Source of the DNA: Piromyces finnis finn
Lineage: Eukaryota; Fungi; Neocallimastigomycota
Reading direction: 5' to 3'
Assembly: GCA_002104945.1 (NCBI GenBank)
Contig: MCFH01000002.1
Location: 1,054,001-1,118,000 of the forward strand
Length of the DNA stretch: 64,000 nucleotides
Shown here: positions 1,761 through 47,453 of the stretch, in pieces
Position numbering within the stretch: the first letter of the stretch is position 1
Layout of the letters: every line of letters begins with the position of its first letter
Notes under the pieces: model-generated
What the model saw: only the letters and a program-made list of their open reading frames with translations
What the model was told of the DNA's origin: nothing
Database searches by the model: none
Made by a program: the position numbers and the translations under genes

Positions 1761-1762
1761 AA

Positions 1763-1849
<87 letters not shown>

Positions 1850-2853: not shown

Positions 2854-2990
<137 letters not shown>

Positions 2991-20514: not shown

Positions 20515-20527
20515 TATTACGCAGCAG
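20515..20527 (+). promoter_or_regulatory. Candidate cis-element TATTACGCAGCAG, copy 1
   Basis: Exact 13-mer also present as reverse complement at 47101-47113. It lies in the divergent C19orf44-like/DnaJ intergenic region, 189 nt from the C19orf44-like ATG. Confidence 0.5.
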
Positions 20528-21057
20528 TAAAAATAAAATTATAAATAAAAAATTGTAATTTATAATTATTTAGTATATGAAAATTTAATATCTGAGTTAT
20601 AATTTTTTTTGTTAAAATTTTGATTGATTTACCAAAAGAAATAAAATATATAAAAAAATGTCTAAATTGTTTAAAATTATATTTTTACTTTTATGTTAAA
20701 AAAAAAAAAAAGAGAAAAATAAAACAATAATATATTTAACATATATAAGTATGAATATAATTAATGTAATATTAATTATATTATAATTTATTTTTTATAA
20801 TTTTTTTTTATTATAATGAATTATTTTTCTTTTAATTTAATTAAAATTTATGATTTAATAAATTTTAATATTTTAAATTATAATATTTATTAGTTGAATG
20901 TTTTTTTTTTTTTATCATTATTATTTTATTTTTAAATAAAACTAAACAATTTTTCTTTCTTTCATTTTCTGTTTTTGAATATACCACTATAGTTATTTAA
21001 TATATATAATCTAAAATAAATTTAAAATAAATTTAAAATATCATTAAATAATATAAA

Positions 21058-23062
21058 ATGAAATATTTTAAAGGAGCTGTAACATTTATACTTTTTGCAC
21101 TACTCATATTATCTGTATATGCGGAAGACTATTATGATACTTTACATGTAAAGAGACATGCCTCCAAACAAGAAATAAGAAAATCATATAAGAAATTATC
21201 ACGGTAATGATAAAATAATATTTCTACGATTTATAATTAAAATTGAAATACTAATAAATATTATTACTATTACTATTTCAATAGAAAATACCATCCTGAT
21301 AAAAATCCGGGAAATAAAGAAGCTGAAGAAAAATTTTTAAAAATTACTGAAGGTTAATACTTATAGAAATTAAAATGCCACTTAAATTAATTTTTATATT
21401 TTATAAAAATAATTTTACAATATTCATATATTTAATATATTTAATATATTTATACTTGAAATGATAGCATATGAAGTTTTAATGGATGATGAAAAGAGAA
21501 ACATCTATAATAAATTTGGAAAAGAAGGTTTAAAAAATAGAAATGAACAAAGGGGAAACCCATTTAATTTTTTCAATAAGTAATTATATATAATTATTAA
21601 ATATATTTAATAATAATATTTTACTTTATAAATATAATTAAAAATCATGAATATTAATAGAACCATATTAAATATCTAATATATTTTATATATAAATAAT
21701 ATAATACAGTTTCAATCATGGTAATAATAATATCAAGCAATTAAAAATTACATATATTATATATATTAAATCTTATTTATATATTATATATCATATAAAA
21801 ATTATTTTTCAACAAAAAACAGATCATGAAGAGGAAAAAAAAGGACCATCAATTAAAATAGATGTAGCTGTAACATTAAAAGAATTATATTTGGGAGCAA
21901 CAATTGATGTGAATATACCAAAATTTAATATTGAATGAATTTTAAAAATATTAATATAAATATATTTATTCGATCATTTACAATAAAAAATCATTAATAT
22001 GTTTAAATATTTATAATAAAAAGGTCGATGTTAATAAAAGAATGATATGCCCACATTGTGGTGGAACTGGTGCCAATAGCTATGATGGATATAAAAAATG
22101 TCATATTTGTGGTGGTACTGGCCAAAAAAAGTTGCAATTTATGCTTGGTCCAGGTATCTTTCAACAAGTTCAAGCTGTGTATGTATATGAAATAATGAAA
22201 TTATATATTACGATTTAAAAAAATATGATTGCAATAATTTAATATTTAATATATATTATATCCTTATTAACTTATGCCATGCTAACATACTAATATTATA
22301 ACAATTGTTCAAAAATATAACGAATATTATTAAAAAAAATGATATTAATTTCAGTTGTGATGTATGTGGTGGAACTGGAAAAATCATTAAAGAAAAATGT
22401 GAAATATGTCATGGTGATAGAGTTATTAGAGGAAATGATATTGTTTCCTTTGTTGTTGAAAGAGGTATGAAGGATGGTGAAGAAATTGTTGTAGAAGAAG
22501 GAGCTGAACAAGCTCCGGATACTACACCGGGTGATTTAATTGTTAAACTTATAATGCAAGAAGATAAAATTTATACTAGAAAGGACGATGATTTATACAG
22601 AACTTTAGAAATTTCATTTGTTGAATCATTACTCGGTTTTCAAAGAGTAATTCATCATTTAGATAATCATGAAATTAATATTGAAAGATCTGGTATTACT
22701 AAACCAAGTAAATATTTATTAGAATATTTTTTTTACTAATATTATAATTATTTTTGATTATTTATATATATTAAAATTAAATTATAATATATATAAAATT
22801 ATTGAACAAATATTATTTATAAGACTTTGTAATAAAGATTCCATCTGAAGGTATGCCAAACAAAAGTGGTGATTTTGGTGATTTATATATTGAAATTATT
22901 GTTTTATATCCAGAAAGTTTAACAAAAGCTCAAGCTAATGGTAAAATAAAGAATTGTTATAATATAATATTATAATTATCTAAATAATATAAATATTAAT
23001 TTTTTTTTTTTTTTTTTAAAAAAAAATATCTAGTTATTGAAGCAAATTTCAAAAAAGAATAA
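21058..23062 (+). CDS. SCJ1: ER-luminal class A DnaJ co-chaperone (Scj1/ERdj3-like)
   Basis: Signal peptide MKYFKGAVTFILFALLILSVYA, J-domain with HPD (KYHPDKNPG), four CxxCxGxG-type zinc motifs (CPHCGGTG, CHICGGTG, CDVCGGTG, CEICHGDR) and a C-terminal substrate domain (PGDLIV, GDLYIEI). Multi-exon, including an 11-nt exon at 21710-21720; ends NFKKE*. Confidence 0.9.
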
Positions 23063-23469
23063 ATGATTTAGTATCAAATATATATAATAAATTTATAAAT
23101 TAGAATAACAATTATATAAATTGTCAATTACTTTTTATTTTTACCAAAAGAAAAAAAAAACATTAATTATAATTATTATTATAATTAAGCAAATAAAACT
23201 AAAGAAAAATAAAAGAAAAATCTTTTTCATAGAATTCTAATTATGGTGTTATTACATAACTTATCATATGTTTTATTTTTTATAAATATATCTCAATATT
23301 ATAATATTAAAACCGTTTATTTATTAAATAAAAAGAAAAACGATATAAATAATTGTTTATTTTTTAATTATTCAATTTACATTATTTTAATAGATATTGA
23401 ATTATAAATTTATATCAGTTTTATGTAATGCAATTAACAAATTAAAGATAAATACATATTGTTTAGTGC

Positions 23470-25682
23470 TTATTCATTATCACTTTGACTTTCATTACCA
23501 CTGTTTTTCTCAAAACTATAAGGACATTCTAGATACTTATGAAACATAACATATTTATTCCAATTTTCTGATGAAGGATACATTTGAATTGCTATATTAT
23601 AATATTATATAAATATGTTAACGTAAATAAAATTTTTCATTTTTAATTATTAATTAAAAAGTAATTACATCTGCATTGTTCCCTTTTTTCTTTTAATTCT
23701 CCCCATCTAGATGGATGTGTATACCATGAACCATACTAATATTTATGTTTATAAATATAAAAAAGTTTTATTTTTAATATTTAATAATAAATAATAATAT
23801 ATATTAGTAATAATAAATGAGAATGTTATATATATGTTAAATGTACCTGGAATCTCTTTGTTGTACTATTAGTTTCTATAAATAAATAAAAATAACATAA
23901 TAAAAATTGAAAAATTGTTAATAAAATTTAAATTAAAAAACAATATAAATATTAAATTGTATTTACTAATTTTCTCCTTTTTATTGCGATTATCTAAATA
24001 TATTATTTTAAAAAGAATTCAGTATGTCGTAAAATATATATATAAAAGTATATTTTAAATAAAATTTATTATATGTAATTACTCTTTTTCTTATATTTTA
24101 TTTTATTTTTAGCCTGTTTAACTTTAGATATTTCAACTCCAAGATTATCTACAATTTTTTCAATATATTCACATGGTGTATTGTGTTCTTCAGTAACATG
24201 AATAGGCATTGGTGGTTTTGAATCAAGTACCATTAAACGACATGCATTTAATAAAATATCAAATTCATTGTAATTTTTATTCCTTTTACTTTTATTTTTT
24301 GTACTTTTGTCTTCTTCTGTCTTTTCTTCTTTTTCATCTTCTTTAATACAATTTATTGAAGGTAATGATAATCTGTAACTCTTTTTACCTTCAAATATAT
24401 TATGACCTGATCTTCCTAAATAATCTTCAAGTGGTTCAATTTGTTTTTTTGATAGGTTTTCATCAGTCCATTTTCTTAAATCATTACTAACTATTATTAT
24501 TTAATTTGGATTTAAGTTTATTTTAAATATTACATAAATTTTTTTGAATTATTTAAATTTTATATATTATTGTATAAAAAAAAAGAAAAAAGAAAAAGCG
24601 TAAAATTTATCAATATTAATAATTAGAATAATTATAATAGATAAATATCATTAAACTATAATTATTTTCAAAAAAAAAAAAAAAAAAAAAAAAAAAACAA
24701 CCTTGAATAATTTTCGTTACTGCTTTAGATTCTTTTTTAACAACATTCTTTTTACTTTTAGTACTTATTGTTTCAAGTTTTGGATTAATAAAACCAGAAT
24801 ATTTTTTTTGATATGATTCCTCCTCTTCTTCACTATTATTGCTATTTATATCATTTTGACTTTCTAATTTTGAATCATCATTTATTAATGTATTGGAGAA
24901 TGTTTTGGTAACTGAATTTTTCGATAAATTTGCATTCTTCTCTATATAAATTCAAAATATGTTATATTAATAAATTTTTATTTGTTATTTAAAATAAATA
25001 GATAATCACCTTCTGTTAGAGATGGCACTACAAAATTATTTGCTATATGCGAAATAGTTGAGTATTTTCTTCGAGAAGGAATACTTTTTTCATCTGGATT
25101 TTCTACTTTGATTAAATGTGAGTATTTTGGATATTTTTTTACTAATATTTTTGAAACTTCATATTTTACTTCTGGTTCAATATCCTCAAAACTTTCAAAC
25201 TATAGTATTTATTTAAAATAATAATGTTATATTAACACATTTGTCTTTTGACTTTTATATAAAGTAAATAACGATTTATTATTATTTTAATTTAAAAAAC
25301 TATATGTATAAATTTAATATCATTTATTACATTCTTTAAAAAAAATTGAAGTTCAATAGATTTTATATATTCTTCTCTTTGTTTAACTTGAAATATTTTC
25401 TTCTCTAAATAATCTTTTTCTTCTAATGATCTTTTTATATTTTTATTTTCTAATTCCTGATATTCATCTTTTACTCTTTTCATTTTTTGTAGTGGTAATC
25501 CTCTTAATGTTATATTTATTCATTATATATATATATATATATTTTGATAATAATAATATTAAGGATTAATAAAATTTTATTGAAATCAAATAATTTTAGA
25601 TGCTTTACTTTTTCCCTGTAATATTTCTATAAAGCCATGGGCTTTTATTAACATAATCTTCTTTATTCAAATTCATTTTCAT
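23470..25682 (-). CDS. Uncharacterised multi-exon protein with a C-terminal RFQYGSWYTHPSRW motif (FAM47-like?)
   Basis: Nine GT-AG exons join in frame from ATG 25682 (MKMNLNKEDYVNKSPWLYRNITGK) to TAA 23470. Family assignment is weak and rests on a single motif. Confidence 0.7.
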
Positions 25683-26491
25683 TTTGAAAATTTATTGTAA
25701 TTATCAATTTAATATTTTTATTAAATAAAATTATATTATTAACTTTTATATTTTATAAATTTCGATTTTAATAAATTATTAACTTTAATTTTTTTCATTA
25801 AATATAAAGAAATGATGTCAAATGTTACATTTTTATATTATTATTATTATTATTAGATATTTTTTTTTATAATAAAACACATTTTTAGAATTCTAATGAA
25901 ATCCTAATAACCTATAAATAATATGATTTAACCATTTAAAATAAATTTAAAAATAACCATAGTTTATATATATATTTTCTATCAAAATCTTTTTATTAAA
26001 GTTTTCATAAAGGTAGTATGGGTGGGATAAAAATTTGGAAAAACATTTAAAGATTTGATAAAGTATATATTGGAGACATTAATACTTTAAAATTAAAGAT
26101 CATATTTTATTAAACGAAATATTATAATATTAGTTTTAATAATGAAAAAAAATGATTTCTTCTTTTAAATACATGAATAAAAATACATAAATTAAGGTTA
26201 TCTGGATTAAAATATTATTTTGACATTTTTCAATTCAATATTTTCATTATAGATTTAAATAAAATCATTAATCATTCATCAAAAAGATATATATAGTTAC
26301 ATTTTAATTTTTTAATTTTTTTTTTTTTTTAGACTAGGAAGAGAATACACTTCTTTTATTTACTTATTTAATTTGTGATATTATATAATATTAGATGATA
26401 ATACATATTGATATAATAAATAATAAATAAAAATAATAAAATATATATAAATAAAAATATAAATATAAAATAGTATAAAATAATTATTTAA

Positions 26492-26840
26492 GTTGCATAA
26501 AAGTTCAATGCAATTCGTACTGCGTGGGATTGGTCCCTACCTAATAAATTGAATGAAATTAAAAAAAGAAGTAACATTAGGTATGATAGTGTGGTGTCCA
26601 CTAAACTCTCCCATGAGCTCATAATGTTTTCATTCTAAGAAATACTAACATTGAACCCTGGGTACGGAACATTGGGAATGTTCCTTTGCCATATCGGTAC
26701 GACGTCGGCGCTCTTGATTACGTTAGGTGTCTTACTAAACCTATCAAAAAGTAGCTTCATTGAGCTACTAATGATAGGGATTGTTTTAGTAAGAAAAGCC
26801 GCGAGACCCTCTACATATGGAACATGAGACTCCGATGTTC
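26492..26840. ncRNA. Unassigned structured non-coding RNA candidate (GC-rich island)
   Basis: 131/330 G+C (~40%) over 26511-26840 by hand count, against nearly G/C-free flanks. Several stems are present and there is no host-like ORF. I found no U1-U6, U3, SRP or RNase P/MRP core signature. Confidence 0.55.
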
Positions 26841-27710
26841 ATTTTAATAAAACATAATATTTTAAAATTATAATAATAAGCTACGCTTTTTATTATTATA
26901 TCAATAAAATAAAAGTTAAAATTTCAAAAATTCTCAATATTAATTTTGAAGATTATTATTTATTAAAAACCAATCTTTTTTTTTTTTTTAAAAATTTTTA
27001 ATTTTATTTATTTATTATTTTAAGTAATAATTTAAAGCAATATTAACAATTGTAAAAATTGAAATAACATTTTTACATTAATAGATATAATAAAAAGGAT
27101 TTTAAAATAAATAATTAGAATATTAGTAAATAATTTAAATTTAAAAAAAAAAAAAATTAGTTACTTGTTTAATTTTTGCGATTATTATTATTTTTGATAA
27201 TTTTTTTTTAATTTTTTCTTAATTTAAAGAAAAATCCATAAATTTTATGAATATAATTTCATCAAATATATGACTTTTCCTTTAATAACCGATAAACTAT
27301 TTTTAAATCAAAAAATAAAAAAACAAATATTATAATTATATAGTTATAATACTTTAAGAAATACATAACTTTTATTATTAATATATTTAATTATTTTTGA
27401 AATATTATATTATGTTTATATATTATTTTTCTATATATATATATTTACATATATATGTAGTTATTTATTTATAATAAGAAGTTTTTATATTATCTAGAGT
27501 TGAAGTTATATTAAATAATAAAAGTTTTAGAAAAAGATAATAAATATATAAATAAATTACAATCTTTGAAATATAATAATTAAAATTTATATAGAAAATT
27601 GCTTGTATATAACGTGATGATATATATAAATGAAAAATATTATTTATATTTGATTTTGTTGTCAATGTTTCATAATATAAATTTAATTGAATAATGAAAA
27701 ATAGTATATG

Positions 27711-27712
<2 letters not shown>

Positions 27713-27757
<45 letters not shown>
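27713..27757. repeat. 45-nt poly(T) homopolymer
   Basis: Read directly; source of the poly-Phe ORF 27694..27888. Confidence 0.95.
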
Positions 27758-27761
<4 letters not shown>

Positions 27762-28301
27762 AATTCTATGTTATTATTGCTATTTTTTTTTTTTTTTTTT
27801 TTTTTTAATTTTTCTCTTTCTCTTTTTTTTTTTAAATAAATTTAACCTATTTATCATATTGAACTATTTATTGATTAAAATTATTTAATGATTAATTATA
27901 AATTATTATGTCTATTGAGTTATATTGATGTTATAATATTCGTTTATTTAGTTGTAATTTATTAATTATTATAATAACTAATAAATTAAAATTATATTAA
28001 ATTATTAAATAATTAATCATTAAAAATCTTCATTCCTTCTATATGTTATATTTTTATTATATACTTGTTAAAGTTATTGCTTTATATTGTATTTATATTT
28101 TGTTATTATAAAACTATATAATAACTTATTAAGTAATTTTTTTTTTTTTGTTTTTATATACCTATGATAATGATATTGTTAGCATTAATATTATTAAAAG
28201 TTGTTGATTAGTATGACTTATATATGGATAAAATAAAATTTTGACAATATTTTGTACTCTATAACATTATATATTTAATATATTTTATTTGTTAGCAGAA
28301 T

Positions 28302-30105
28302 TTAATGAAGTTTCCAAAGATTCCAACGTGGACGTCCTTCAAGTGAATATGATGAATTGAAACGAGATTCTGCTGGTGATAAGTAATAATAATCTTTATT
28401 ACTATCCTTTCCAGTAATAACTTTATTTTTAACTATCTTTCTTTTTGTGCCATTCTTTGAACCAGTATCGATTATCGAAGATGCTGAAGAGGTAGATCTA
28501 GTTGGTGAAGCTGGTGGGGTATATAATCTAGAAGAAACTGGCTTCTTCTTTTTAGATATAACATTAATAATATTACATTGTGTACCCTTATCAATCTTTT
28601 TGGCCTTTGCAACTTTTGGGGCTGGATCAGTTTGAACTTCAATTGAAGTAGTAGTAATTGGATTTGATTGATTGTAGGCCTCGATTTCTTGGGATACACT
28701 AACAGCAACTGATGTTTGTTCAGATAAAAGTTGTTCTTGTAATAAAGAAATTTCATTTCTAGCTTCTGATAATAAACCATCAACTTCAACATAATCTTCC
28801 TTTAATTTAGCATTTTCTTTTGAAACTTGTTCAATTATTTGCATTAAAGTTTCAATTTTTTGACCTTGTGTTTCATTTACAGATGCTCCTCCTTCGCTTC
28901 TTGTCTTTGAAACATCACTCTTTCCATCCTATAGTTTCATATATAATATTTTAGTATGCTGTTTTTATTTTTATTTTATGATAATTACATAAAAAATTAG
29001 TATTCATATCAAAGAAAATTACAATATATAATGTATCCGTTTTTCCTTCTTTTTCATAAATTTCTAATAATTCCTCCTGAGTTGAATTATAATATTCATT
29101 ATATGTGGCTTCCAAATTATCTATTATTATATTTTAAAAAATTAATATAATAACTAAAGAATATAATATTTTTTTTTTAATTTTCAATTTACCATATTTA
29201 GTTTTTAAATTTGACAATTCAGTTTTTAAAGTGGATTCTGAGCTTTGTACTTCTTTTAATTGCTTAACAGCAATATCCAACTATATCATTTATTATTTAA
29301 TTTAGTATTTAGAAAATTTTATATTTATTTTACTTATTTAAAATACTAAAATTAATATTAACCTCCTTAGTTAATCGTGTGTTATCTTTTTCAAATTTAT
29401 ATATTTTAGATTCAACCTCATTATACTTTTGATTAAGTGTCTTATTTTCTTCAGTTAAATCAATGTTTTTTTGTTCATAAACCTCACATTGAACTTGTAA
29501 TGAAGTAATTTTCTATAAATATTTTTAATAATTACTTGTTAATTTACTTTTTTCATAAAATATATATTTATTTTTTTTATATCATACATTTGTTAAAGAT
29601 TTCTTTTCGTCATTTAAAGAATCAAATTTTGTAGAATTTCTTTCTAATGATTCCATTGTTTGATTTAATAAAGATTTATATTCTTGTTGCTGATCTTTTA
29701 AATGTGAATTTGTTTTTTTAAGTTCAGCAATATTATCAGTATCGTTTTCATGTTTTACCATTAAAGCTTGAGCAATTTCTATGTTAAATAGTTTTCCATG
29801 ACATGCAATTACATTAGTAAAGTAAAAATAATTTTATTTTAGACTTTATAATTTTTAACTTACGAACTGCAAGAGATAATTCGTTAGTTCTTTGAACAAG
29901 AATACTTTCTATTTTATCCATGTCTTTCCCTTCAATATCAACAACTTCTTTTGAATTATTGGCTATTATATTTATTAATAATAAATTAATAAAAATTTTT
30001 TTTCCTTTCATTTATTTAATATTTAAACTTACATAATTGATCTAATAATGCATAAACTTCTGAAAACATTTCAGAATCATTTTCGTAGTTATTATCTTCT
30101 AACAT
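28302..30105 (-). CDS. Coiled-coil protein with a HAP1_N/TRAK/BICDR-like CC1 box (candidate dynein-dynactin adaptor)
   Basis: Seven GT-AG exons join in frame from ATG 30105. DMDKIESILVQRTNELSLAVQIAQALMVKH resembles TRAK1 DIDAVTRLLEEKERDLELAARIGQSLLKKN (from memory). A long heptad region follows, then a Ser/Thr/Lys-rich tail ending RPRWNLWKLH*. Confidence 0.72.
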
Positions 30106-31955
30106 TTTAATATATATTTATTATAATTACTTTTATTAAAAAAAGATTAAAAAAGTTAGCATTATGTTTTTTACATTAATAATAACTTATATAATAATAA
30201 TTTATAAGTAATAATATATTATCATTGCTATAATTACTTATTGTTTAATTTAATTTAATTATTTATTATTAATAGTTATGAATATTGCAAATATAACTAT
30301 ATATCAATTCTATGTAATATGTAATAATTGTATATATAGTTTTATTGCAAACTGATATTTATTGGAAAAAAAAGTTTTAGATATCAAATCAAATATATAA
30401 TATTCTTTTTCTGTTTTTTTTTTTATTTTATTTTGTAAATGCTATTAATATTTAAATAAAGATAAAACTATCAAAGTTTTTAATTTTTTTGTCGTTTTCT
30501 TTATTTTAATAATTAATGTTTTTCTTATTCTTTTTCCTTTTCCTTTTTTTTTTTTTTATTTATTACTATTATTTTTTTTTTTTTTTGTTTTATTGAAAAT
30601 TTTTTAAGACTTTAAAAAAAATTTTTTTATAACCTATTTATTAAATATTATCAAATTAAAATACTATATATATTAAATATATATATTTCATATATTAATT
30701 TCAAAAATAATTGATTTATTTTTAATGTCTATTAAATATTAAAACAAATTTGATATTATCATTAATTAAGAATTAAAGAATTAATAGTATTAATAATATA
30801 ATGTATTTTTTTTTTAAATACACAATATATAGCTATGATTAAAATACTTAAAGGTATAAATTATTCTTCTGAATGATGAAAAGTTTATAATTTTTTTTCT
30901 TTTTTCTTAAAGAAAATAAAGTTATATAATATTATTTTATTATAATTTGTAGAATTTTTTTATTATTTCGTAACCACATAACAAAAGATTTAATTTACTT
31001 TAAATGGTCACACAAAAATCATAAAATTTTAATAATACATATTTGTAAAAAAAGTTTTTTTTAAAAAAAAAGCTTTTAGTATTTTTATATTAAATATAAA
31101 TATTTTATAATTAAAGTATTACTTATTTATATAACTATTTATTATATAAAGTGATATATAATTATTATTTTTAGTATTTTAATCACACCAAAAAAATATT
31201 TCTATAAAAATATCATTTAATCAAAAATTTTGCTTTAAAATATAATAATATAGCAATATATTGGAATAATATTTATATTAAATTGAATTAATATATTGTA
31301 TTAATTAAAATTTTATATTAAAACATGATTTCCTGTACCACCACTAGAACATTTATTATTATAAATAGATTATAAATATAATAAATATAGAAATTATAGC
31401 ACCTAAATTAAATCATGTATTTTTTATTATGTTGCTCACATGAATACTTAATCAATGATATAGAAACATAAAATTAAATACTGAAATATGATAAACCAAT
31501 TTAATCTTAATTGTACAGTAAACTAATAATAATTAAAATAATTGCTGTCTTTTACTTAATATTTATATATTATATAGGTTGCAAAAAAATTTTCAAACAA
31601 TTATTAATATTAATAATAGTTGTGGATTAAAATAATAATAATTTTTTTTATATTTGTATCAATAAAAGAATTTATATAGATAAAATATTTTAATTATTTA
31701 TACTTTATCTTTTGTAAATAGTTTTTATGATACATTTAATTTTTAATATATTATTATTAGTTTGATACATTAATAAATAATATATTATCCATCCATATTT
31801 AATATTAAAATAATATATTGAAATGAATTCTATAGATTATAAATTTCAATTGATTCTCAATCTATATAAGTAAAAGTTTTTTTTTTTTTAAAATACTCTA
31901 CAATTAATTTTAAAATCTTTTAATTGGGATTTATTAAAGAGAAATTATATTTAAT

Positions 31956-33162
31956 ATGTCTTCAGAAGTTATTGCTTTTATTGGTGGTGGTAACATGGCT
32001 ACCTCTTTAATTGGTAAATACTATATATAATCTTTTTCAAGTATATATAATTTTATTACATTTAATTCATACAAGAAAAAAATATACTATAAAATGAAAA
32101 TTATTTGTTTTATTATTATTATTATTATTATTATATAATTTAAGAATTATTTAAAAATATATTTATAAGTATATAAATAAATATATATAAAATATTTTCA
32201 AAAAGGCTTCCAATATAAAGTGAAATATTGTTTAATTAAGACATATTAACTTCATAATTATTATTTCATAATTGTATTTCTTAAATGGATTTCATTTATA
32301 AATTAACAATAATAATAATAATTAATTTTATCTACATATTAATACTTATTTAAAATTATATTTCAAAGGTGGTCTTGTTTCTACTGGTTACGATTCAAAG
32401 AAATTAGTTGTTTTTGAACCAAATGAAGCACAAGCCAATAAATTAAAAACTAATTATAACATCATTCTTGCAAAGAGTGGTTCTGAAGCCATTACTGGTA
32501 CTGAAGAAAGTAAGGCCGCTGATATCGTTTTATTTGCTGTCAAACCACAAATTATCAAAGAAGTAGCTACTGGTGTTGCTGCTGCTATTCAAAAGGTAAA
32601 CCCATTAGTAATTTCTATTTGTGCTGGTATTCGTACTGTTGACCTTTCTCGCTGGTGTAATTGCCCAGAATTATCTATTGTAAGAGTTATGCCAAATACT
32701 CCAGCTCTTTTACAACAAGGTGCTACAGGTATGTTCCCAAATGCTTATGTTAACCCAAAGCAAAAGGAAAGTGCTACTGCTATTCTTTCTTCATTCTCAA
32801 AGAGTTCTTACTGGGTTGACAAAGAAGAACTTATTGATGTTGTTACTGGTTTATCTGGTTCTGGTCCAGCTTATTTCTTCCTTATGTGTGAAGCTTTATC
32901 TGAAGCTGCCCAAAAATTAGGTCTTCCAAAGGAAGCTGCTGATGGTTTAGCTGCTCAAACCTGTTACGGTTCCGGTGCTATGCTTTTAAAGGGTGATGAA
33001 GATGCTGCTACTTTAAGAAAGAAGGTTACTTCACCAAATGGTACTACTTATGCTGCTCTCCAATCATTTGAAAAGGACAACTTTAACGAAATTTGTTTCA
33101 AGGCCGTTGAAGCTGCTACTCTTAGAGGAAAGGAAATGGGTGAAGTTTTTGGTCAACAATAA
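31956..33162 (+). CDS. PRO3: Pyrroline-5-carboxylate reductase, 2 exons, 283 aa
   Basis: Exons 31956-32013 and 32369-33162 (852 nt). Motifs IAFIGGGNMA, LFAVKPQ, ISICAGI, RVMPNTP, GLSGSGPAYFF and VTSPNGTT are present. Confidence 0.97.
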
Positions 33163-33985: not shown

Positions 33986-36900
33986 TCAAACTTTGCTATA
34001 TTTAAATAAAAATGGACTTGGTCTAGAAATAACTGGCAAAATATCTATTTCTAATTTTGGTTCATTATATTTTAATATATCTTTTAAACTTGAAACCTTG
34101 GTCTATATCACATAAAATAAAATAATATTTTAGTAAATTTTTATAAATCAATTAATTTTTATAAAAATTTATAATGTTTTAAAAGAAAATATTTTTATTT
34201 ATTTCTACCTTTGGATATGGAACATCAATTATTTTATCAATAATTTTATTATATTTATCTCTAATAGAGATTTTTGGTTTTGCTTTAAATGATTTAATGG
34301 TAATAAACTAGTTATAATAATGTAGTAAAAGATTAGAATATATTATATTAATAATAATAATTTAATTTAATTTTAAAAATAATTTACCATGTCTTCTAAA
34401 TTTTTTATATCTTCCTCTTTGAACAAAGAAATATTTTGTTGTATGTTATATATAATGTTTTGTATAATAGGTCGTATATCTATATTGTGCTCTAATAGTT
34501 CAACTATATCTATTGCTGAAATAGTGGCAATATTTAATATATTTTGGTAATTTTTCATTTTTGACAGTAATAATTGATCATGTTCTAGTTTTTCTTCATG
34601 TATCTTGAATTCTTCATTTGATAATTCATTACTTTTACTAGTTTCAGAATCATTAATATCCAAATAATTTAATAGATCTTTTCTATCATAATTATTCATA
34701 CCAACTGAATTATTTTTTTGATGCTTTATTGTTTTATCACTATTTTTATGATTTTCTTCTATATCGTATTCATTAATATTATTTATATTACTTAATGCTT
34801 TGTAATTTTCATCCGTTTCTTCATTTTCATGTATCATTGTCATTTTCTCAAAATTGAAATGTTGTTTTTTTAGAGTCTTTTCATTCTTTGCATTTGAAAT
34901 ATCCATATATACATCATTATTAATATCATCTTGTTTCATTTTTATTAATAAATTGTTTTCAAGTTTATCTTTACTATTCTTCTTAACAAGTTCTAATTCT
35001 TCTTCTGGCTTTTTTAAAATAGATTTATGATTTGAAGTTCGAATATCTTTCTTTTCTTCATTTTTCTCAAATTGCTTAAAGAAATTATTAATCATAGGAC
35101 CATTTCTATTATAAACCATTTTCCCATCAAATGTTTTAACTAAATATTCTTTATAATTATATGTGGTAATAGCTGAATCAACTACAGCTTTATTTTCCTT
35201 TTCTGTTACATTTTGATTTTCTTTTTTATCTGTTTCAATTATTTTATTCATTTTTATAATATTACTCTTGAATGATTTTCTTTTCTCTTTAATCCTTATA
35301 ACATCTCGACTTGGGAAAGACATCATTTTTGCTTTGTTAATATTACTTTCTTTTTTCTTATTAAATACTGTTGAGATATTGGTTGATGAATTTACACTTT
35401 TTGATATTTTTCTTGATGTGCTTTTTTTTACCTTTCCTTCATAACTGAATATACTACTTTTTCCGTTTATACTTTTTTCAGATTTAAATAAACAATTTTT
35501 CTTTCTGTTTATACTCCTTTCAAAATTTATTAATGACATTGAATCATCAAAATTTTTAATATTATCATTACTTTCATTTTTAACATTATATCTTTTATAT
35601 TCTAATAATTTAATCATTGAAGTTATTAAATTAATATCAAATTGAATACCACTTGAAATAGCATTATACCAAAAGTCGTAATCATCAATTTTTGTTAATT
35701 TTTCCCATGGATGAATATAATTTTGCTTAGAATTAAAATAAATAATTAAAGTATTTTTATTATTAATATGATATTTATAATTTTTATGAATATTTAAAAC
35801 TTATACTTACTATTATATTTTTATAATTATATACAAGATCTTTAATATTTTCATTGATTCGTATGATATATCCACAACCTTTTAATATAAACCAATAAAT
35901 AATTATATATTTTTTCAAATGATTATTAAAAATTTAAAAATATAAAAGCTTATTTTTATTTTATTACTTACCACTAATTGGATATTTAAATATTTTATTC
36001 TTTGATATTATTGATATAGTTGTTTCAAAGTTTCCAATTACTTTAGGCAAAATTACTATTTTTGTTAATTTCTTTTCTTTTACATTCAAATGTAATTCAT
36101 TTGGCAAATATATATCTACATTATCTATTGCTTCATTTTCAAATTTTAAATCTAATGGCATATCACTTGAGTTATATATAGTAAAATTATATACTTTTGA
36201 ATTATTACATGGACATGGACCTTTTTTTAAAAAAAATTTTAGTATAAAATTAAGTATTAATTAATATTAGTATAAAATTAAGTATTTTTTAAAATAATAT
36301 AAAACATTATTCTATTTAATATATATAATAATGATTGAATAAATACCAATGTTAAAATCTTTTGGTGAAATGTCAATGTTAACCCTTCCTCCAATACCAA
36401 CCATATTTATTTCTTTATATGTTCTTCCTTTACATTCAATAATGTAATTTGAAGAAATTTTTGTATTTACTGATGGTTTAAAAAATAAATCTAAAGTTAT
36501 TTTTTCTTTAACTAATAATGAACCACTGCTCTGAGATATTAAAAAGTTTGGATTAATTCTAGATTGATATGCATTCCATTTTAATGGAACAATTCCATTA
36601 TTACAAAGTTCAATGGTTTCTTTATGTACTCTTCCTATTGCTCTAATTCCATAATCTATATATAATCTATTTATTGTGATCTCCGGGAAAGCAGATTTTC
36701 CACGAACAAATATACAATAATTACCAATATTTGTTTCCAAAGATATCGTTGTTCTTAAGTCGTAACTACTATTAGGTATCCATATAACATTAATAATATT
36801 CTCATCTTCTCCATCAATTACCCCCATTTTTCTTGATAATTTTAATGGATATGAATAACCAATACTATATGTTAAAGGATATTTTCCATAATTTCTTAGA

Positions 36901-39900
36901 ATTAAAGGTTTTACAATTTGAGAATTTGTAGGATTAATACCCATATCAATAAATTTAAATTCTTCTGGATTAAGAATACTCTCTTCACATAATCCATGAA
37001 TATCAATACAATATTCATCAGTTAATAAATCAGTATAAATAATTATTTTACTTTCAATTTTTCCAACTTCATTATTAATTAACGAGACCTTTACATCAGT
37101 AGATTCTCCAGCTTTAATTGAACCTTTGGAAGATGATAAACGAATCATAGATTTTAAATCTTTTTCTAAAATTACAAATGAAGTTTTCAATGTACCACAA
37201 TTCTTTATTTTTAAAACTTTGGATGGTTTCATGCTTTTTTCATAAATGCCATAATCTAAATCTTTCAAATTAAATTCTAATTTTACAGTTCCTGATGAAA
37301 ATTTTATTGGTATTTCATTAACAGAATATGGTGATTCAACTGTCATATTAATAGAAGCATTGTCTATGACAGTGGGTGTATAAGTAACAATTACTTCTTT
37401 CTCATTATATGGAGAAATAACTAGATTTTCAGGTGAGAAAGAAAAATCATTATTTTTATAATCAGTTGTAAACGAAATTGGATAGTTAACATCACCAATG
37501 TTCTTTAAAATTAACTTTTGTTCATAAGAATTACCAATAATACAATTTTCAAAAGAAAGATTTTGTTTCGAAAAAATTATTACAGATTCTTTTCCTGAAC
37601 CTTTTAATTCAATCTCCCAACTTTCGTTTTTTGAACTAACTATTAACTTTCCTGTTGGTGGGTTTTCTTCTTTTGGATAAAACATTAATTCAAGATTAAA
37701 TTTTTGGTTTGGATGAATTGAAATTCTGTTTATACGTTGAATTTTAGTTTATTATATATAAATTAATATTATTATAATATAATAAAACGAAAAATATAAG
37801 ATAATTTTTAATTTTATAACAAATTTATTAACAATTAATATACTATTATAGTATTTATTCAAATATTATATTTAATTATTAAATAGTGATATTTACCCTT
37901 TTTCTGGCCATTTCTTAGTCTTAAAAAAATTAATATTATTAACAAGGACAAATTTAGTCAAATGTAATATTGCTGTTCCTTCATTTGTTATAGGTAAATA
38001 GCTAATTATACTTTTTCCAATCATGCAATTTCCAAAGTCAAATGTTTTAAAATGTAAAAGTGAGGGTTTAGGGATACCACCACCACCATACATTCTTAAT
38101 CTAACCGGATTAGAACAGTTTGGTTGAAAATAAACTATAGATGATAAGAATGTAAAATCAGTAGGTTTAAATACAAACTCAATAGTTACTGATTGATTAA
38201 CTCTTAAAAATCCGTTATCAGGAATTGCTCTTAAAAATGGACAATCATGAATAATATTAAAACTGATAGATTGTTTTCCTACATTTGTAAACGTTCTTTT
38301 TATTGTTTCTTCATGTCCAATTGGTTGATGAAAGAAATTAAGGATTGAAGTATCATCACAAACAATACAAATTGATTTTGTTACTGCTGTTAATGAAATT
38401 TCATGTGTTTGCGAGTTTGGAATATCCGGTTTACATATTAATGTTCCTAAAAATGTATCATCTGATGATATGTTAATTTCAACTTCTATTTCCTTAGAAC
38501 TATATGAACCTAATTGAATTTGTGGTGGGTTTACTTTTAAGTATGGTTCTTGTTTTATATAGGATTGACTAGATATATTCTGTTGTGATATTAATTTATA
38601 AAAATGTTTTCTTCTTTTTAATTGAGATGAAAATTGAACCCTTAAATATTTTAACGCAAAAGTATTTACATTAACCGTATCATCAGCATGAAGTTTCTCT
38701 ACACTATTTGCATTAATTGAACTTAACATAGTATTCTTTTTTGACATATTTGCTTCTTCTTCTCCATTATTATCTGAATATAAAATAATATTTTGTAGCA
38801 TCCGCCAATAATCTCTTGCAGTCCAAGTTGGATCTTCATTATTTTTTTCTTTTTCTTGCATAACCATATTTCTTGCCCATGGTGATCTTGGATCATGGTT
38901 GGAATAATTATTTTTTAATGTAACATAAGAGGTTCCTATTTTTTGAATAACTTGGTGACCTAACGTCATCCATTCAAAATTAACATTACATGGAATTGTT
39001 CCATTATTTAAAATAGTAATTTTCTTTTTAAATGTAAAGTTATTTGCAATATCACCAAATTCAAGATCTCCTTTATGATTAATACTAATGGAACCAGCTT
39101 TTCCCTTAACTGGAATTTCCTTAAAATAATTAATTGATTTGATTCTAATAATATCTGAAGTAAGAATTGTTTTTCTTGCCCAATATCTTACTAACAATTC
39201 TATATAATTCCCTGGAAGAATATTTTCTGTAATACATGTTTTCCATGAATAAACATTATTTTTATTCTGTTTTCTGGTCGTATTTATAAATAATTTTTCT
39301 TCTAGAAACTCTTTCTGATTTTCCGGAGTACATATTGAAAAATCCTTACATAAAAAAATATTAATATAATAATTATAAATAAATAAATAAGTAAAAATAT
39401 TATAATAATAACTTTTTTATTTACATATTAAATTTAATATTAATGTTATAATAGTAACTTACAGAATCTGCTAGTTCAACACAAATTGGGATTGACACTA
39501 TTCCTCTATTAATAATATAGAAACTTTTTTCACATGAAGTATGAATTGGAATCATTCCAAAATTTATTTCTTCCTCTTCTGTTTCATTTTTATCTGGAAA
39601 GTATATATTTAAAACACCAATATCTCCTTTTCCAACAATCAATACATTAATTAAATGATTTTCCCAAAATATTTTTAAATTTGTTTTAAATACGCTTTCT
39701 GATTTTGGTGAAAATCGTATTATAATTGGAACACTTTCTCCAATATGAACAAAACCACTTTGAGGAGTAATAGTGTATTCATTGATAGTAATAGGTTGAA
39801 TAAAAAATTCTACACCAAATTTTCCTTCATTGGTTAAATAGAAAGTTGTTGTATATGTAGTGTTTATTGATATTACACCTAAATCATATGTTGGTATTTC

Positions 39901-42900
39901 ATTAGGACTATTTTTTAAAGTATTAAATATTAAATTATGATTTTCATCATATAATGATAATATAGGATAAGCAGCTCTTCCAACAATAGTTATATCTTTA
40001 AATTCATTTCCGTAATAAACTCTTATATTTTTTTTAATAGGGATAGCTAGAATTGGTGTATATTGTATAATAATATCAGTATTCTTTAATTTATCGCAAT
40101 ATCCATCTGGATTTACTATATTCAAACCAATTGATTTTAAATTATAAATCCATTTTTTCTCTTTTTCATAGTACGATCTTTTTAAAAGATTATCATCTGT
40201 ATAAGATGGTGCGGTTTCTGGTCTTTGATTTGTAATATTTATCTTCTCTGTTAACATAAAGCTTGAACTTGGTCTATTCTTTGTAATATAATTGTAATTG
40301 TTTTCTTTACTAGTAATTTTATTTTGAATTTCTAGTTTTTTAATTTCTTTAGTATATACGCTATAATCTCCATCAAGTGGTTCTGGTCTTACATGATAAG
40401 TAACACCCATATTCGATTTATTAGAAATTGGTAGCATATAAACAAATGTCTGATCTATTTTACATGTTCCCATATCAACAATATTAGATGGAAGATTAAT
40501 ATCAACATTATATTTTCCACCTGTTCCAGTTAATGGAATTTTAATATCTTTATATTCTAATGAAAAAATTAAATTATAATTGTACACATATATATCTCTT
40601 GGTCTAAAAATAATTATAATTCTTTTCTCTTCATTAACCTTTAGTTTTCCAGATGAATTACTAACATAAAAGACATTCTTGAATTTATCATCAATCTTTA
40701 TTTCTTTCTCATTTTCTTTTGAATTAAATGAATATCTAATTTCATTAATATTAAGTTTAATCTCGTATTTTAATATTGTATTTCCTTCGTTCTTTATAGT
40801 AAACTTCTTTTTCGTATTCTTATTAATTAAGCATGTTCCAAAATTTATCGAATCATAAACTGTTTCAGGATAAATTGAAAATTTAGGAATACCAACTTTA
40901 GCTTTCAACCTAAAATTTAAACTTTCCTTTTCGTCATCAATAAGTATCAAAAAGGCACTTACATTTAAAGTTTCAACAATATTTGGATCATAAATCAATT
41001 TTATTGGAGTTATTGAATTTGCATATGCAACAATATATCCATTTTCATTCTCACAGCAAGGATCTACCTTAATTTTTGGGTGATAACATTTCAATTTTAA
41101 TAATATATCAGGTTCTCCATGATTTTGAATATTTATTGTTGCTTTATTAGGATAACCTAAAAATGATATACCAAAATCAACAATATCCTTATCTGCAGTT
41201 AATTCAGGATAATTTCCCTTTCCAAAAAGATAAACATATGAATACTCTATTAAATTGGAACCTGGTATATATGACGAAATTTTAATTTTTCCTTTATATT
41301 GAATTACTTCCTTAGGTGTAAATCCAATTCTAAGAGTTTTTTCTTCACCAATTCCAATTATTCCTTGCTCTTCATTTACAGAGAAAATGATATTATCATC
41401 AAGTTCTATATAAAAATTTAAATTCATTAAACTGTAATTTTTAAGAACAATATATTTGAATGATGTTTTCCCGATTATATTTGATAAAAAATTTAAATCT
41501 GTATTTGAGCATTGTAAATGTGATCCACTACTTATACCACTAATTTCTATTGATGAATAACCTATGTTTTCTGTATATAAATTTAATAATGATCTATAGT
41601 GATAATTTGGTAAAGATGGATTGAAAAATATCTCAATATCTTGAGTATATCCAGGCTTTAATCTTCCTTTTTCTGGAAAAAAAGTAAAAGGACATAAGTT
41701 ATTAGATAATTTTTCAATATCATTTTTAAATAAGATACCAGTATTATTATCATCCAATAATTTATTATCATCTTCCTCTATTTCATCATCATCTTCTTCT
41801 TCAAAACTATTAAGTATTTCTATATTTTCATTCTTAATAATAGAATAATAAGTTCGATCAAACTTCAAATGCCAATTTAATTTTTCAGAACCTTTATTCA
41901 TAAATTCAATTTTAATACTCTGATTATTTAATTAATGAATGAATGAATTAATTAATGTATAAAATATAAAAACATATTATTTTATATAATAAGTATTTCA
42001 TAAATACCTTTTTATTTTGAAATGGTACGATGCCGAAATCATAATTTCTTATCTTAAAGTTCAATATTGGTTGGATTGAACCATAAATTTTATATACATT
42101 TTCTTGAGAACTCATATTTTCCCAATTTGAAATAATTTTTATTTCTGAACTAAATTTCCCCTAAATTAAATAGAAATTATTTAATATTTAATAATAATTT
42201 AAAAAAATATATATATATATTTATTTTTTTTTTGATTAATTTACAATTCTTTTTGGTGATATTGATAGTTGAATATTTATTTTTTGATTTGGTTTTAAAG
42301 TTAATGGAAACAATGGTGCTCTTTTAATTATCTCAAAAGGAACACTTTTATTGGCATTATTATCATTTTGTGATGTCATAGTATCTGGTAAAAGTTTTTC
42401 ATAATTTATAATAGAATATTGTTCTTTAACTTTATATTTTAAAATTGTTTCATCCATATCATATTCAATATCATTTATATATTTATATGTAAAATTATTA
42501 TCCAAATTGTCATTCCAATTTATTACATTGTCATTTGGGTTTTCAGCTTCAATTTCACATTCATAAATATTAGCATCATCAATGCATTTCATAATGTTTA
42601 TTTCATTTATTATAAAATCAAGAGTTCCATTATTTTGCAAACAAAAAGATTTAATTAATTTATCTGTATACTGAAGATACCCAAAATCTAAAATACTACT
42701 ATCTATTATATAATGATTTGTATTTATATTGTAGACCATTTTTGGTTGGAATACCTTAAATTTTATATCACAAATACCATAATTTCCAAAAATAGGTAAA
42801 CTTTGAAATGAATTAACCTCTGAATTATATATTAATGATTGATATTGAGGCCCAATTTTTCTATATAAATATTTTATTGGAATAATAAAGCGTTCATTTG

Positions 42901-45900
42901 GTTCTAATTCTTTAATATTATTTCCAATAAGAGAAAAAGGATACGGTGCAAATGATAGTATATTATATTTATCGTGATTATTATTAATAATTTTTATTGA
43001 TTTTTCTAATACATTACCATCTGATATGGATCCAAAGTCTAATCCTTCATCTATAACTGTTACACTAGAAGGTTTCGTATATCCTTTCAATACTATTATC
43101 TTCGTAAATTCCATATTCTGTATATCTTTTAGGTCTTTAGATCCAATATTAATATTATCAGTTAAAGATGTATAATATTCAATAAAAAAACCTACATTTA
43201 AATTTCTAATATTTAACAATGAATAACTTATTTCAACTTCTGATACTTCAAATGGTTTCAATAGTAGGGTTTTTAGATTTTGAGTAAATTGACATTTTCT
43301 TTCTTTTGTTTCTTTCATTTCTTCAAGTATACGTTTATTTAAATATGGGTTTTTGTATATAATTTTTTCCAATTTTGAATCTGTTTTTTTTAGATATACA
43401 TTACATCTTATACTATTTGTTGACTTATTTCTAAGAATAAATTTCCTTGAAAATACCGTCTCATCAGAGTATAAAGAGTATTTAATTCCAGATATTTTTT
43501 TTCTAATTCCTATATTGATCTCATTATTAATAGTACCTTCAATTGCTACGGACAATGAACCATGATTAATAGAATCATCAAAAATAGTTATTACTCCGAA
43601 AAATATTAATTCATCTTCTACAAAGTTTCTATCTTCTATCAAATCTAAATTTATTGTTACAGGAATATCAACATTTTTATTTGCGTCAATATTTCCTTCT
43701 GATGGCATTAATATAATAAATGGATGAGATATTGCAATATGGTATTTTTGTTGTACATTAGTCTTATTAAAAAGAGTGATATATTTTATATTATTGTTTT
43801 TATAGGTTTCGTTATAATTAATATTTATTTTAAATATTTTTATTTCAAAGATATCTGATTTACTTTTAAATAAATCTATATTATCAGTTGCTTTAATTGA
43901 ATTTTTATTTAATTGCTTGAATTTATTAAATAACTGGGTATTATATTTTTCTTTATAAAAGGAAAGATATTTATTAAAATTTATATCGTTATTAACAAAC
44001 AATTCATTATCATATACAGAACCATAAACAAAATAATTATTCAATTTTATTGAATTGTTTTTATCGACTTTTAAATAAATGGGAATTTTATATATTCCAG
44101 ATAAATTGCTACAAAAAATAATACTGATAATGATTGTATCCTTTCGTTTAAATTTTATTTTTATACCATTATAATTTTTATCTTCATATTCCTTAAACTC
44201 TATGTATGATGTTTTGTTTTTTATACTTAAATTAAAAGGATTGTTTGAGTTTGGCATATATAATATACAATTAACTTGTTTATTTGTCATATTAATTAAT
44301 GGAACATCTATTACGGATACTTCATTAACTTTTATGTTAGGGAAATAAATTTCTTTATATACTGGAAATATCATAGAAGGACCAGAAAACGAAATGACAT
44401 CAATAATTTTTGTATTTGTAAATGGACAAGTTATATAAATATATTCATGTCTTTCTCCGGAATAATATGATATAAATTTTATCTTTAACTTTTTTTTTTC
44501 TAAAGGATTTAAAATTATTTCTTTGTTTTCATTAATAATTATTTCGTTGGTTGACGCCTCCATTAATATTGGTATTTTATTGTATTTGTCAATATTTTCT
44601 ATAACAAGAGTTTTTGTTATTTCATTACTATATATATCTGTAGGGCCAAAATCTAATTTATTTTTGTATATTTTTATTGATTCATCACAAATACCACATA
44701 AATCAATTCTTAAAATTTCACCACTACTAGTTACTACTAATATTTGATTAGTTAATCTTTTACCTATATCTTTTTTAGTAGGTAAGAATTTACCAATATA
44801 CATTTTCTTTTCATTTGAGCATAATTCATCAGATTCAAAAGGAAATATAAACCTATTAGAATTAGAATTGTCTTTCAATAATAATGAAACTGATATAGTT
44901 GTAGATGTTAAGTTTGTAACATAAAATGAAAAATTTCTACTATAACCATTTGGACAATAACCAATATTAATTTTATTTATTGATAGTTTAATTGAAGGAT
45001 AATTGATTGCATATAATGAAATTCTTTCTAATGAATATCCGTTTAAAGAACGTACTTTTAAATATCCAAATATTTCAGGTTTTATACATGATAAATAAGG
45101 TTGAGGCTTAAAGCGGATTTTAACTAACAAGTAGTTATTTTTTGGTATAAGTCCAAATGATGGTTTAACTTCAAAATATTCTGGTGGATATACTTGAATT
45201 CTAAAATAGGTATCCTTTATTCTTGATGAGTTATGCAAAAACAAATCTCTTGTTAAAGGATATTTATTTAATACTAAAACAGGATATTTTAAATTAAAAG
45301 ATAAAGTTGAAATATATGGAGAATCAACATTACTTTTAAATGAGATGTTATTTATATTATCTATATATTTTTGAAGAGAATTTGATTGTGTTGGATTTTC
45401 AGAATCATTATTTGGAATATCTTATTAATAATAATTAAAAATAGATAATATATTTTAAGCAAAAATATCATATTATAAATTAAAAAATAAAATTAATAAA
45501 AAGATGTTATTAAAAATTATTAATTATATAAAATAATTAAAATTTATATTAATTCTAACATTTTATTATTTCTTTTGATTCTATTAAATTAGATATTTCC
45601 TTTTCTGGATATGGGATATCAATATTTGATTTAAGAATTTTAATAATGTTATCTTTTGTTAATGGAGTTTTATTTTTTTGATATATTTCAATACTTTCAA
45701 ACCCTTGTATTTTTGATTTTTCTAACAAATATTTCATTCTATAATATATATATCCTTCTTTTATCTGTTCAATAGGAATTCTTAGTAATACATTATCTGG
45801 AACAATTGGATACCAAACTGACCAAAAAACATTTAATTTTTCAAATAAAATTTTGTCTATTATATCACTTGTTTCACTTTCTTTATTGTTTTCATTTTCA

Positions 45901-46868
45901 ATTTTATTTTCTATTTTATTTGAAAAATCCTGCTTTTTTGATATATTGTTATATATATTTAATTCATATTCTTTAGACATTTCATTTATTTTTTCTCGAA
46001 ATTGATATTCTACTCTCATTCTTCCTTTATTTGTTCTTGGATAATATTTATTAATAATATTTAGCGCTTCTATTTGTAATAGTTTATTAGACGAAGAATT
46101 CAGAATTGAAGATAATAATAAATCAAAATATCTCATAAAATTATCGTTTAAGCAAGGTGATTTATTTATAAATACACCAATTGATCTTAAAGAATAAATC
46201 ATTTCTGTTATATCAAATCCTTTTTCATATAATCTGCTGTCTGAAAAATAGTTTATATCATTTATAATTTCGGTACTTAAAACACTTGGGTATAAAGATT
46301 GAAATCGAGAAAGTAATTTATTGAATAATCTCTCGATTATTCTTTTTGAGTTATTTAAATCACTGACTATTGGTAATATTTTTCCTATTAATTCAGATGC
46401 ATAACACCGATTTATCTTTATCTATATATATAGCATGTAAATATTAAAAAAAATAAAAGTACCATTATTAAATATAAAAACATAATAGATAAAATGGATA
46501 TTATTTACAATTTTAAAATACCTCATCAGATATCACTATATTTCCTAATTTAATTATTAATTTTTCTACATTTGCATTATTCGGTGTTAAGAATTTTGTA
46601 AAACATGGTATTGATAATAAACATTTTAAAGTATATAATCGTATAAATGACTCTTCATTTGATAATTGCTGTACTATATTATTCCATATATCATTATATA
46701 AAAATGAGTATAATACATTCTAAGTATGATAAATATGAGATTTTTATGTTAATTATTATATTACTTATTATAAATATTATATTTAAAAAAATTAATTACA
46801 TAATCTTCAAGAAGAAATTCTATATCTTTTCTTATCCTTTTAATTTCATTATAATTATTTGGTATCAT
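33986..46868 (-). CDS. Giant protein (3862 aa by my 13-exon model): N-terminal helical/HEAT-like region, long tandem array of ASH/Hydin-type Ig-like domains, low-complexity C-terminus
   Basis: Exons 46868-46800, 46719-46522, 46421-45560, 45420-42245, 42160-42008, 41919-39463, 39344-37897, 37725-36347, 36220-35972, 35878-35835, 35725-34388, 34307-34209 and 34102-33986 sum to 11589 nt and are all GT-AG and in frame. The model unites six of the separately listed ORFs. Recurrent ~100-aa units show (L/I)DFG..., a N.G motif, F.(I/V).P..G.(I/L).P and a terminal F.P. Confidence 0.85.
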
Positions 46869-47100
46869 TTTTTAACAAAAAATTATATAATTACAAACAA
46901 AAGAAAATATAATAATGATATTATAATAATAGTTATATATATAAATTATTGATAATAATAGATTTATTGTAAATTTAAATATGGTATATTAAAATATTAT
47001 TATTAACAATTTATATTATATAATTATTATTATAATTGTATTATTTATAAAATATAACATTTATATAAAAAAGATATAAGTATTTTATCTATATTTTGTT

Positions 47101-47113
47101 CTGCTGCGTAATA
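47101..47113 (-). promoter_or_regulatory. Candidate cis-element TATTACGCAGCAG, copy 2
   Basis: Plus strand reads CTGCTGCGTAATA, 232 nt from the ATG of the giant ASH gene, in the divergent ASH/CSL4 intergenic region. Confidence 0.5.
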
Positions 47114-47453
47114 TGATCATAAAATTAACTTAAAACCCTTTTCTATTAAATTCATAATTAAAAAACATAAACCTTAATGATAAAAAAATCATATTTTCTA
47201 ATATTTTTTTATGAATAAATTATAATATATAAAATTCGGAGTTTTAAGAATATTTTAATTATTTAATTTTTAAAAATCGAATTTTCAAAAATTGAATTTG
47301 TATAGTATAATACATTAATGTAATATATTACATTACATTTTAACATTTTTATTTTAGATATTTAAAATTATTATCGCCAATCATAATTTTTAATTTTCTT
47401 TTCAATTTAAAAGTAAAAATTGTTGTTTTTTAAATTATTAAAATAATATAAAA

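Follow-up and report, generated by a model that had tools for sequence, protein, structure and literature searches.

Ciliary genes of animals and choanoflagellates carry the RFX X-box, which has the form GTNRCC N0-3 RGYAAC. Other regulatory sites that invite comparison here are those of the yeast general regulatory factors Reb1 (TTACCCG) and Abf1, which are compact, rich in information and present in hundreds of copies per genome, and the hybrid sites of basic leucine zipper (bZIP) proteins of the PAR/C/EBP type (TTACGCAA), together with the TTAC half-sites of the Yap type. Among zoosporic fungi, published work that looked for enriched motifs in the promoters of the chytrid ciliome recovered none, RFX or other (PMC10530576). 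The 13-mer TATTACGCAGCAG, which occurs twice in a 64,000-nucleotide stretch of the Piromyces finnis genome (contig MCFH01000002.1, positions 1,054,001 to 1,118,000; hereafter the window), bears on the control of flagellum genes in these fungi. The comparisons presented below indicate that the word is a conserved promoter element and probably a binding site for a gene regulator. It is not a general flagellar-gene element, because it is too rare genome-wide for such a role. Intergenic DNA of gut fungi is nearly free of G and C, and G/C-containing words that persist across genera are therefore unusually readable candidates for regulatory sites.

Copy 1 of the 13-mer occupies positions 20515 to 20527 on the forward strand, with the invariant core CGCAGCA at 20520 to 20526, and copy 2 is its exact reverse complement at 47101 to 47113 on the minus strand. 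All such coordinates refer to the 64-kb window, and genome counts refer to the whole 56.5 Mb assembly in 232 contigs. Copy 1 is located 189 nt upstream of the ATG of an orphan open reading frame (ORF; 16933 to 20325, minus strand), pointing opposite to the direction of that gene, and 530 nt upstream of the ATG of an SCJ1-like gene (21058), whose orientation it shares. Copy 2 is located 232 nt upstream of the ATG of a giant gene (46868), in the orientation of that gene, and 340 nt from the ATG of CSL4 (47454). The DNA around the two copies has a GC content of 0.09 and 0.11, respectively, and within the 732-nt intergenic region of the first promoter, copy 1 is the only word with at least five G/C in nine positions. 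The first-pass annotation of this DNA had reported both sites on opposite strands, their G/C-poor surroundings, the four distances to start codons, and the opposite orientation of the copies relative to the orphan and the giant gene, all of which could be reproduced. Its statement that the window holds no other intergenic copy is likewise borne out, as neither a further 7-mer CGCAGCA nor a further 9-mer, even with one mismatch, is found there.

Several types of trivial repetition can be set aside. The 13-mer has two copies in the entire genome, both in the window, and the same two sites account for all genome copies of the 11-mer TTACGCAGCAG. Similarity between the two loci stops at the edges of TATTACGCAGCAG and the flanks are unrelated, so neither a dispersed repeat, whose discovery would have overturned the original proposal, nor a local duplication explains the pair. 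A search of the window against Rfam returned no family. The pair also stands out statistically. TATTACGCAGCAG is the sole repeated 13-mer with at least six G/C in the low-GC DNA of the window (12.5 kb), 0.00 copies are expected in the dinucleotide-shuffled window, and a comparable GC-rich repeated pair of 13-mers appeared in none of 300 block shuffles that preserved the composition of the window. However, these statistics alone are not decisive, because the pair comes from a scan of some thousand windows of one genome, in which roughly one such coincidence could arise. The pair might thus be two unrelated GC-containing words that are identical by chance and were picked from many windows. About 0.2 genome copies of the 13-mer are expected from base composition (an estimate), and the 9-mer within it is not over-represented in the genome.

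The strongest conservation is found at the promoter of the giant gene. When its N-terminal exon was used as a query, orthologous loci were recovered from three relatives (L033, L034 and L040) on contigs from fungal enrichment metagenomes. In a multiple alignment, their exon proteins share 64-75% identity with that of the window (BLASTP gives 45-68%), and two of these taxa share 64% identity. The divergent CSL4 neighbor is retained in two of the three. The 9-mer TACGCAGCA is invariant and in the orientation of the giant gene in all three relatives, where it is embedded in the instances TGTTACGCAGCAG, TTTTACGCAGCAA and TTATACGCAGCAA. The distance from this core to the ATG is also similar: 233 nt in the window, 227 nt in L033, 201 nt in L034 and 209 nt in L040. 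In the four-taxon alignment of the DNA upstream of the giant-gene ATG (A1), only seven G/C columns are invariant, of which five fall within TACGCAGCA and two within the sequence TATACC. A second near-copy in L033 (TGTTACGCATCAG at 9986) was dismissed, since it lies in coding sequence and is not kept in the window.

Relatives of the other promoter are more difficult to obtain. A contig found through a fragment from a phmmer search (L080) carries a colinear ortholog of the orphan ORF that is 54% identical, along with 421 nt of upstream DNA. Reading this DNA reveals one clearly G/C-rich word, GTTGCTGCGAAC, which holds TTCGCAGCA opposite to the direction of the gene. This word is located 226 nt before the ATG, and its relative orientation is as in the window. 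Another sequence (L079) has just about 66 nt before its ATG and gave nothing usable. Similarly, a metagenome scan with the orphan protein produced nothing usable, and a scan with an SCJ1 exon produced distant, short contigs only. As a separate observation, the ortholog in L080 is read as two open frames, 422 to 3172 (916 amino acids) and 3347 to 3850 (167 amino acids), about 175 nt apart; this split could represent an intron, a frameshift or an assembly error.

At both promoters, position and orientation of the word are kept and its flanks have diverged, which is the pattern expected for a phylogenetic footprint. Conservation at orthologous positions, which the first-pass annotation had put forward as a check, is thus observed in three further taxa at the giant-gene promoter and in one at the orphan promoter. 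When 150 kb of comparison sequence was examined, its low-GC part held 9-mer matches with no more than one mismatch at the two window sites and their orthologous positions only. Because the core is kept at these positions and near-matches are absent elsewhere in the low-GC comparison DNA, both copies are classed as phylogenetic footprints. The consensus across instances is T-[A/T]-CGCAGCA-[G/A], with TTACGCAGCAG as the window form. The four flanking positions that make a 13-mer from the 9-mer vary among orthologs, which is a point in favor of chance. However, each copy is conserved independently of the other in further taxa, with place and orientation unchanged, and no spurious near-match occurs in the comparison sequence. 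Coincidence is therefore judged very improbable, and we infer from these alignments that the copies of TATTACGCAGCAG are not chance occurrences.

The promoter between the giant gene and CSL4 contains other conserved blocks. Proceeding outward from the giant-gene ATG at 46868, the order is a long AT-rich block, the 13-mer, the block TTCTTAAAACTCCGAATT, the block ATGATTGGCGATAATAA, and then the start of the CSL4 transcript. The AT-rich block (46981 to 47017, minus strand) is about 37 nt long, ends in TATACCAT, is conserved in all four taxa (A1 columns ~560-600), and is located 113-149 nt before the giant-gene ATG, where it probably represents the core promoter or the TATA region. The block TTCTTAAAACTCCGAATT (47233 to 47250, minus strand) comprises 18 nt that are identical in the window, L033 (~9111-9128) and L034 (~2274-2291), and it contains a second word of interest, AACTCCGA. 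An insulator between AACTCCGA and CSL4 was considered and rejected, as the order of blocks is wrong for this function. The window and the relatives L033 and L034 all retain the block ATGATTGGCGATAATAA (47368 to 47384, minus strand), which lies on the CSL4 side, about 40 nt upstream of the start of a CSL4 transcript contig. Its sequence resembles a CCAAT box or, alternatively, a PAC-like element (GCGAT) of a ribosome-biogenesis or exosome gene.

Transcript evidence covers this promoter alone. The giant-gene transcript contig ends at 46882, and CSL4 transcripts from four runs begin between 47423 and 47480, which places the CSL4 start at or upstream of 47423. Positions 46883 to 47422 have no transcript contig cover, and copy 2 consequently falls outside all listed transcript pieces. 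In one run (X1), a contig has a loose end at 47020 that matches nothing anywhere in the window. Shallow read depth over 46894 to 47135 is taken to reflect short AT-rich mis-matches, although this is not proven. A reading of the word as a 3' splice site or as part of an intron in the 5' untranslated region was rejected because the word closes with GCAA, not CAG, in two of the orthologs.

Given this layout, the element might serve the housekeeping partners, SCJ1-like and CSL4, or bidirectional promoters as such. Both window copies are in divergent promoters, copy 1 is oriented as SCJ1, and the synteny of CSL4 and the giant gene is kept together with the element. However, the distance to the giant-gene ATG is steady (201-233 nt) whereas the CSL4 side is variable, the SCJ1 ATG is 530 nt away, and CSL4 has a conserved proximal block of its own. 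Furthermore, three additional copies described below, upstream of BBS2, an N-rich ORF and an RNase T2 gene, are outside compact divergent promoters. A role tied to the housekeeping genes or to bidirectionality is thus considered quite unlikely, although either gene of each divergent pair may be the target.

Genome-wide counts provide little indication that the word is enriched. There are 19 copies of TACGCAGCA versus 22 of its reversed control, 64 copies of TCGCAGCA versus 77, and 54 copies of the 11-mer with no more than one mismatch versus 91; the one-mismatch 11-mers that were inspected are mostly coding. The 8-mer ACGCAGCA does exceed its control (109 copies versus 74), but at least part of this excess is due to dispersed repeats. 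Fifteen of the 20 newly examined copies of ACGCAGCA sit in three repeated sequences, which represent three dispersed families of about 36% G+C whose copies are mostly inside long open frames (members L082-L084, L092, L093, L095 and L096 for one family; L087, L088, L091, L098 and L099 for another; and L086, L089 and L097 for the third). The majority of the 19 TACGCAGCA sites are likewise coding or in repeats. The enrichment at flagellar genes that the first-pass annotation had suggested as a check is therefore not apparent from these counts, nor from individual genes. No copy, not even of the 7-mer, is near TMEM138 (58282 to 58590), the third cilium gene of the window, as had already been noticed at the outset, and none is near BBS1 or BBS5. 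A BBSome-wide element was excluded on the basis of these last two genes.

About eight of the inspected copies of the word are non-coding, and every one of these that has a recognizable gene beside it is located 148-250 nt before an ATG (five copies, including the two in the window). One of the additional sites is a copy of TACGCAGCA at G000:C162:536358-536366 (L054 1501-1509), in the opposite orientation to BBS2 and 207 nt upstream of its putative ATG. No other G/C-rich word is present in the roughly 1.1 kb that precede BBS2, whose putative ATG lies in a very short first exon (ATGAAACCATA) with GT directly after it. A second copy precedes the ATG of an N-rich ORF of unassigned function (G000:C167, about 179.7 kb) by 250 nt, and a third is 148 nt before a gene for a secreted RNase T2 (C203, about 212.0 kb). 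Among the five promoter-proximal copies, therefore, those of the Hydin/CFAP65-type giant gene and BBS2 precede genes of cilium type, those of the orphan and the N-rich ORF precede genes of unassigned function, and that of RNase T2 precedes a non-flagellar gene. Their common placement suggests a single class of site.

The reading we favor, with a confidence somewhat above even, is that the word is a compact, high-information promoter element and the predicted binding site of a sequence-specific factor with a small regulon. A sequence-specific DNA-binding protein would recognize T-[A/T]-CGCAGCA-[G/A], and the bound element would then act on transcription from a position roughly 150-250 nt upstream of start codons, in either orientation. 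The regulon would comprise a handful of promoters in the genome, including those of BBS2, the RNase T2 gene and the N-rich gene.

A number of considerations weigh against this interpretation. The footprint evidence covers the two window promoters, and at the orphan promoter it comes from one related taxon, whose 9-mer differs at one position. Transcript evidence consists of contigs, which are unable to fix the start of transcription. Also, 39 of the 109 ACGCAGCA sites were inspected, and the other 70 as well as all 64 TCGCAGCA sites are represented by coordinates only. That a protein binds the word is something that we infer from sequence. Finally, regulons of such a small size are unusual, and the true consensus may for this reason be looser than the one given above.

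The original proposal, a site for a regulator of flagellar genes in particular, survives in part. Its cis-regulatory half agrees with the footprints at both promoters and with the copy about 207 nt before BBS2, but the assignment to flagellar genes as a class is not supported by the genome counts or by TMEM138, BBS1 and BBS5. A connection with the flagellum or the zoospore may exist, though it is unproven, and it would concern a subset of genes at most. In this narrower version, the word would be the site of a regulator for a small module of the zoospore program, consisting of the Hydin/CFAP65-type giant gene, BBS2 and lineage-specific orphans, and would operate beside the wider element AACTCCGA in a two-tier cis-code. 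This version is regarded as tentative and, on present indications, rather improbable.

Certain observations bear on the two-tier arrangement. The only exact window copy of AACTCCGA lies in the TTCTTAAAACTCCGAATT block of the giant-gene promoter, where the word is 130-187 nt from the conserved AACTCCGA block. The 12-mer AAAACTCCGAAT has 10 copies in the genome, one of which (L076 1501) precedes the N-terminal exons of WDR35/IFT121 by about 490 nt. Like the 13-mer, AACTCCGA contains G and C and is conserved within an AT-rich promoter; the giant-gene promoter supplies independent conservation evidence for AACTCCGA as a candidate element. The two differ in that their letters are unrelated, and of the ten AAAACTCCGAAT loci only this promoter contains both. 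No ACGCAGCA-like word is near the other nine AAAACTCCGAAT loci, and none of these nine has a 9-mer core with up to two mismatches that keeps the ACGC half, which led us to reject the word as a general partner of AACTCCGA. The orphan promoter has only a one-mismatch form of AACTCCGA, AACTCAGA.

The remaining evidence on a subset of flagellar or zoospore genes is similarly divided. Of the five promoter-proximal copies, two stand before genes of ciliary type. The orphan and the N-rich protein might be zoospore proteins confined to this lineage, and the niche is open, given that no enriched motif is known for the chytrid ciliome (PMC10530576). However, once the discovery site is excluded, one ciliary gene among four is not significant (approximately p = 0.15, an estimate that assumes about 4% ciliary genes). 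The RNase T2 gene also has the element, the three cilium genes named above do not, and the genome counts limit the element to a few per cent of flagellar genes. In addition, the C19orf44 label of the orphan, which had made it appear to be a flagellar gene, is unsupported. For these reasons a site devoted to part of the flagellar program, with AACTCCGA or another more general element beside it, is viewed as doubtful, and we return to the small-regulon promoter element as the preferred explanation.

The genes that adjoin the two promoters differ greatly in how well they can be assigned. The orphan ORF encodes a low-complexity protein of 1130 amino acids, which the first-pass annotation had called C19orf44-like. 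No Pfam match was found even at E = 10, either with the whole protein or with seven pieces of it, and membership in C19orf44/DUF4614 (PF15391) could not be recovered. An exhaustive phmmer search of 1.84 billion representatives returned only two fragments from close relatives (P0004 and P0005), and word searches and Atlas searches yielded no usable relative. The earlier label is thus unsupported, as is a flagellar role for the orphan, which by these searches is lineage-restricted. The 5' part of the SCJ1-like DnaJ gene (21058 to 22739, plus strand) was read directly and includes the ATG, J-domain exons and CxxCxGxG exons.

The giant gene (33986 to 46868, minus strand; its 3' limit is provisional) encodes a chain of immunoglobulin-like (ASH) domains of the Hydin/CFAP65/Cep192 type, in agreement with its previous description as a giant ASH gene. 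Pfam matches include PF22544, PF24507, PF15780 and Cep192 domains, and the solved proteins closest to it are Hydin and FAP65/CFAP65, both from the axonemal central apparatus. Transcript contigs demonstrate that the gene is expressed and spliced, and a spliced contig of run X1 confirms the GT..AG introns at its 5' end (45421 to 45559, 46422 to 46521, and 46674 to 46799, minus strand). The exosome subunit gene CSL4 (47454 to 48800, plus strand) has orthologous loci with ECR1_N and EXOSC1 domains in the same divergent layout, and its spliced transcripts are present in four runs. The divergent arrangement with SCJ1 and CSL4 partners, which had been offered as a caveat to the first proposal, is confirmed. 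CSL4 also appears to contain a micro-exon of about 11 nt at 48535 to 48545 (plus strand; GAGAAACTATG), preceded by AG and followed by GT; in each of the four transcript runs it is visible as nine extra letters within a 201-nt skip.

As a result of this analysis, the core, position and copy number of the word are defined, a false lead (the general flagellar switch) is removed, and five promoters are left as leads. A demonstrated flagellar link would matter, given the lack of an enriched motif in the chytrid ciliome, and a two-tier cis-code, if true, would be the first for fungal flagellar genes, for which none is known so far.

Comparison of the word with established sites helps to delimit what it might be. 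Like the RFX X-box, it is a short promoter-proximal element that precedes at least two cilium-type genes, and one variant, GTTCGCAGCAAC of the orphan ortholog in L080, has a perfect right half-site, AGCAAC. In contrast, the window copies match 8 of 12 half-site positions and the six orthologous instances about 8-10 of 12, with a best ortholog value of 10 of 12 (as read from ten aligned instances). The invariant CGCAGCA would occupy the spacer and junction of an X-box, whose defining AAC is not kept, and the word is not enriched genome-wide. Identity with the X-box was therefore rejected on the basis of the half-sites as well as the lack of ciliary enrichment. A forkhead/FoxJ1 site (RYAAAYA) was also rejected, since this core occurs on neither strand of TATTACGCAGCAG and the nearest sequence is GTAATAT on the complement. 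The initial view that the word is neither an RFX X-box nor a FoxJ1 site is accordingly upheld.

Other resemblances, to bZIP sites and to those of general regulatory factors, agree poorly with how the word is conserved or with its number of copies. The segment TTACGCAG of the window copies equals TTACGCAA at seven of eight positions, which can serve as a lead only. However, the leading TT varies among instances (ATAC, GTTC, CTAC), the GCA beyond the octamer is invariant, and there is no palindrome. With Reb1 and Abf1 sites the word shares its compactness, its independence of orientation, its location 100-250 nt upstream of start codons, and its frequent occurrence in divergent promoters. It differs from them in abundance, as those sites number in the hundreds and the word has about eight inspected non-coding copies.

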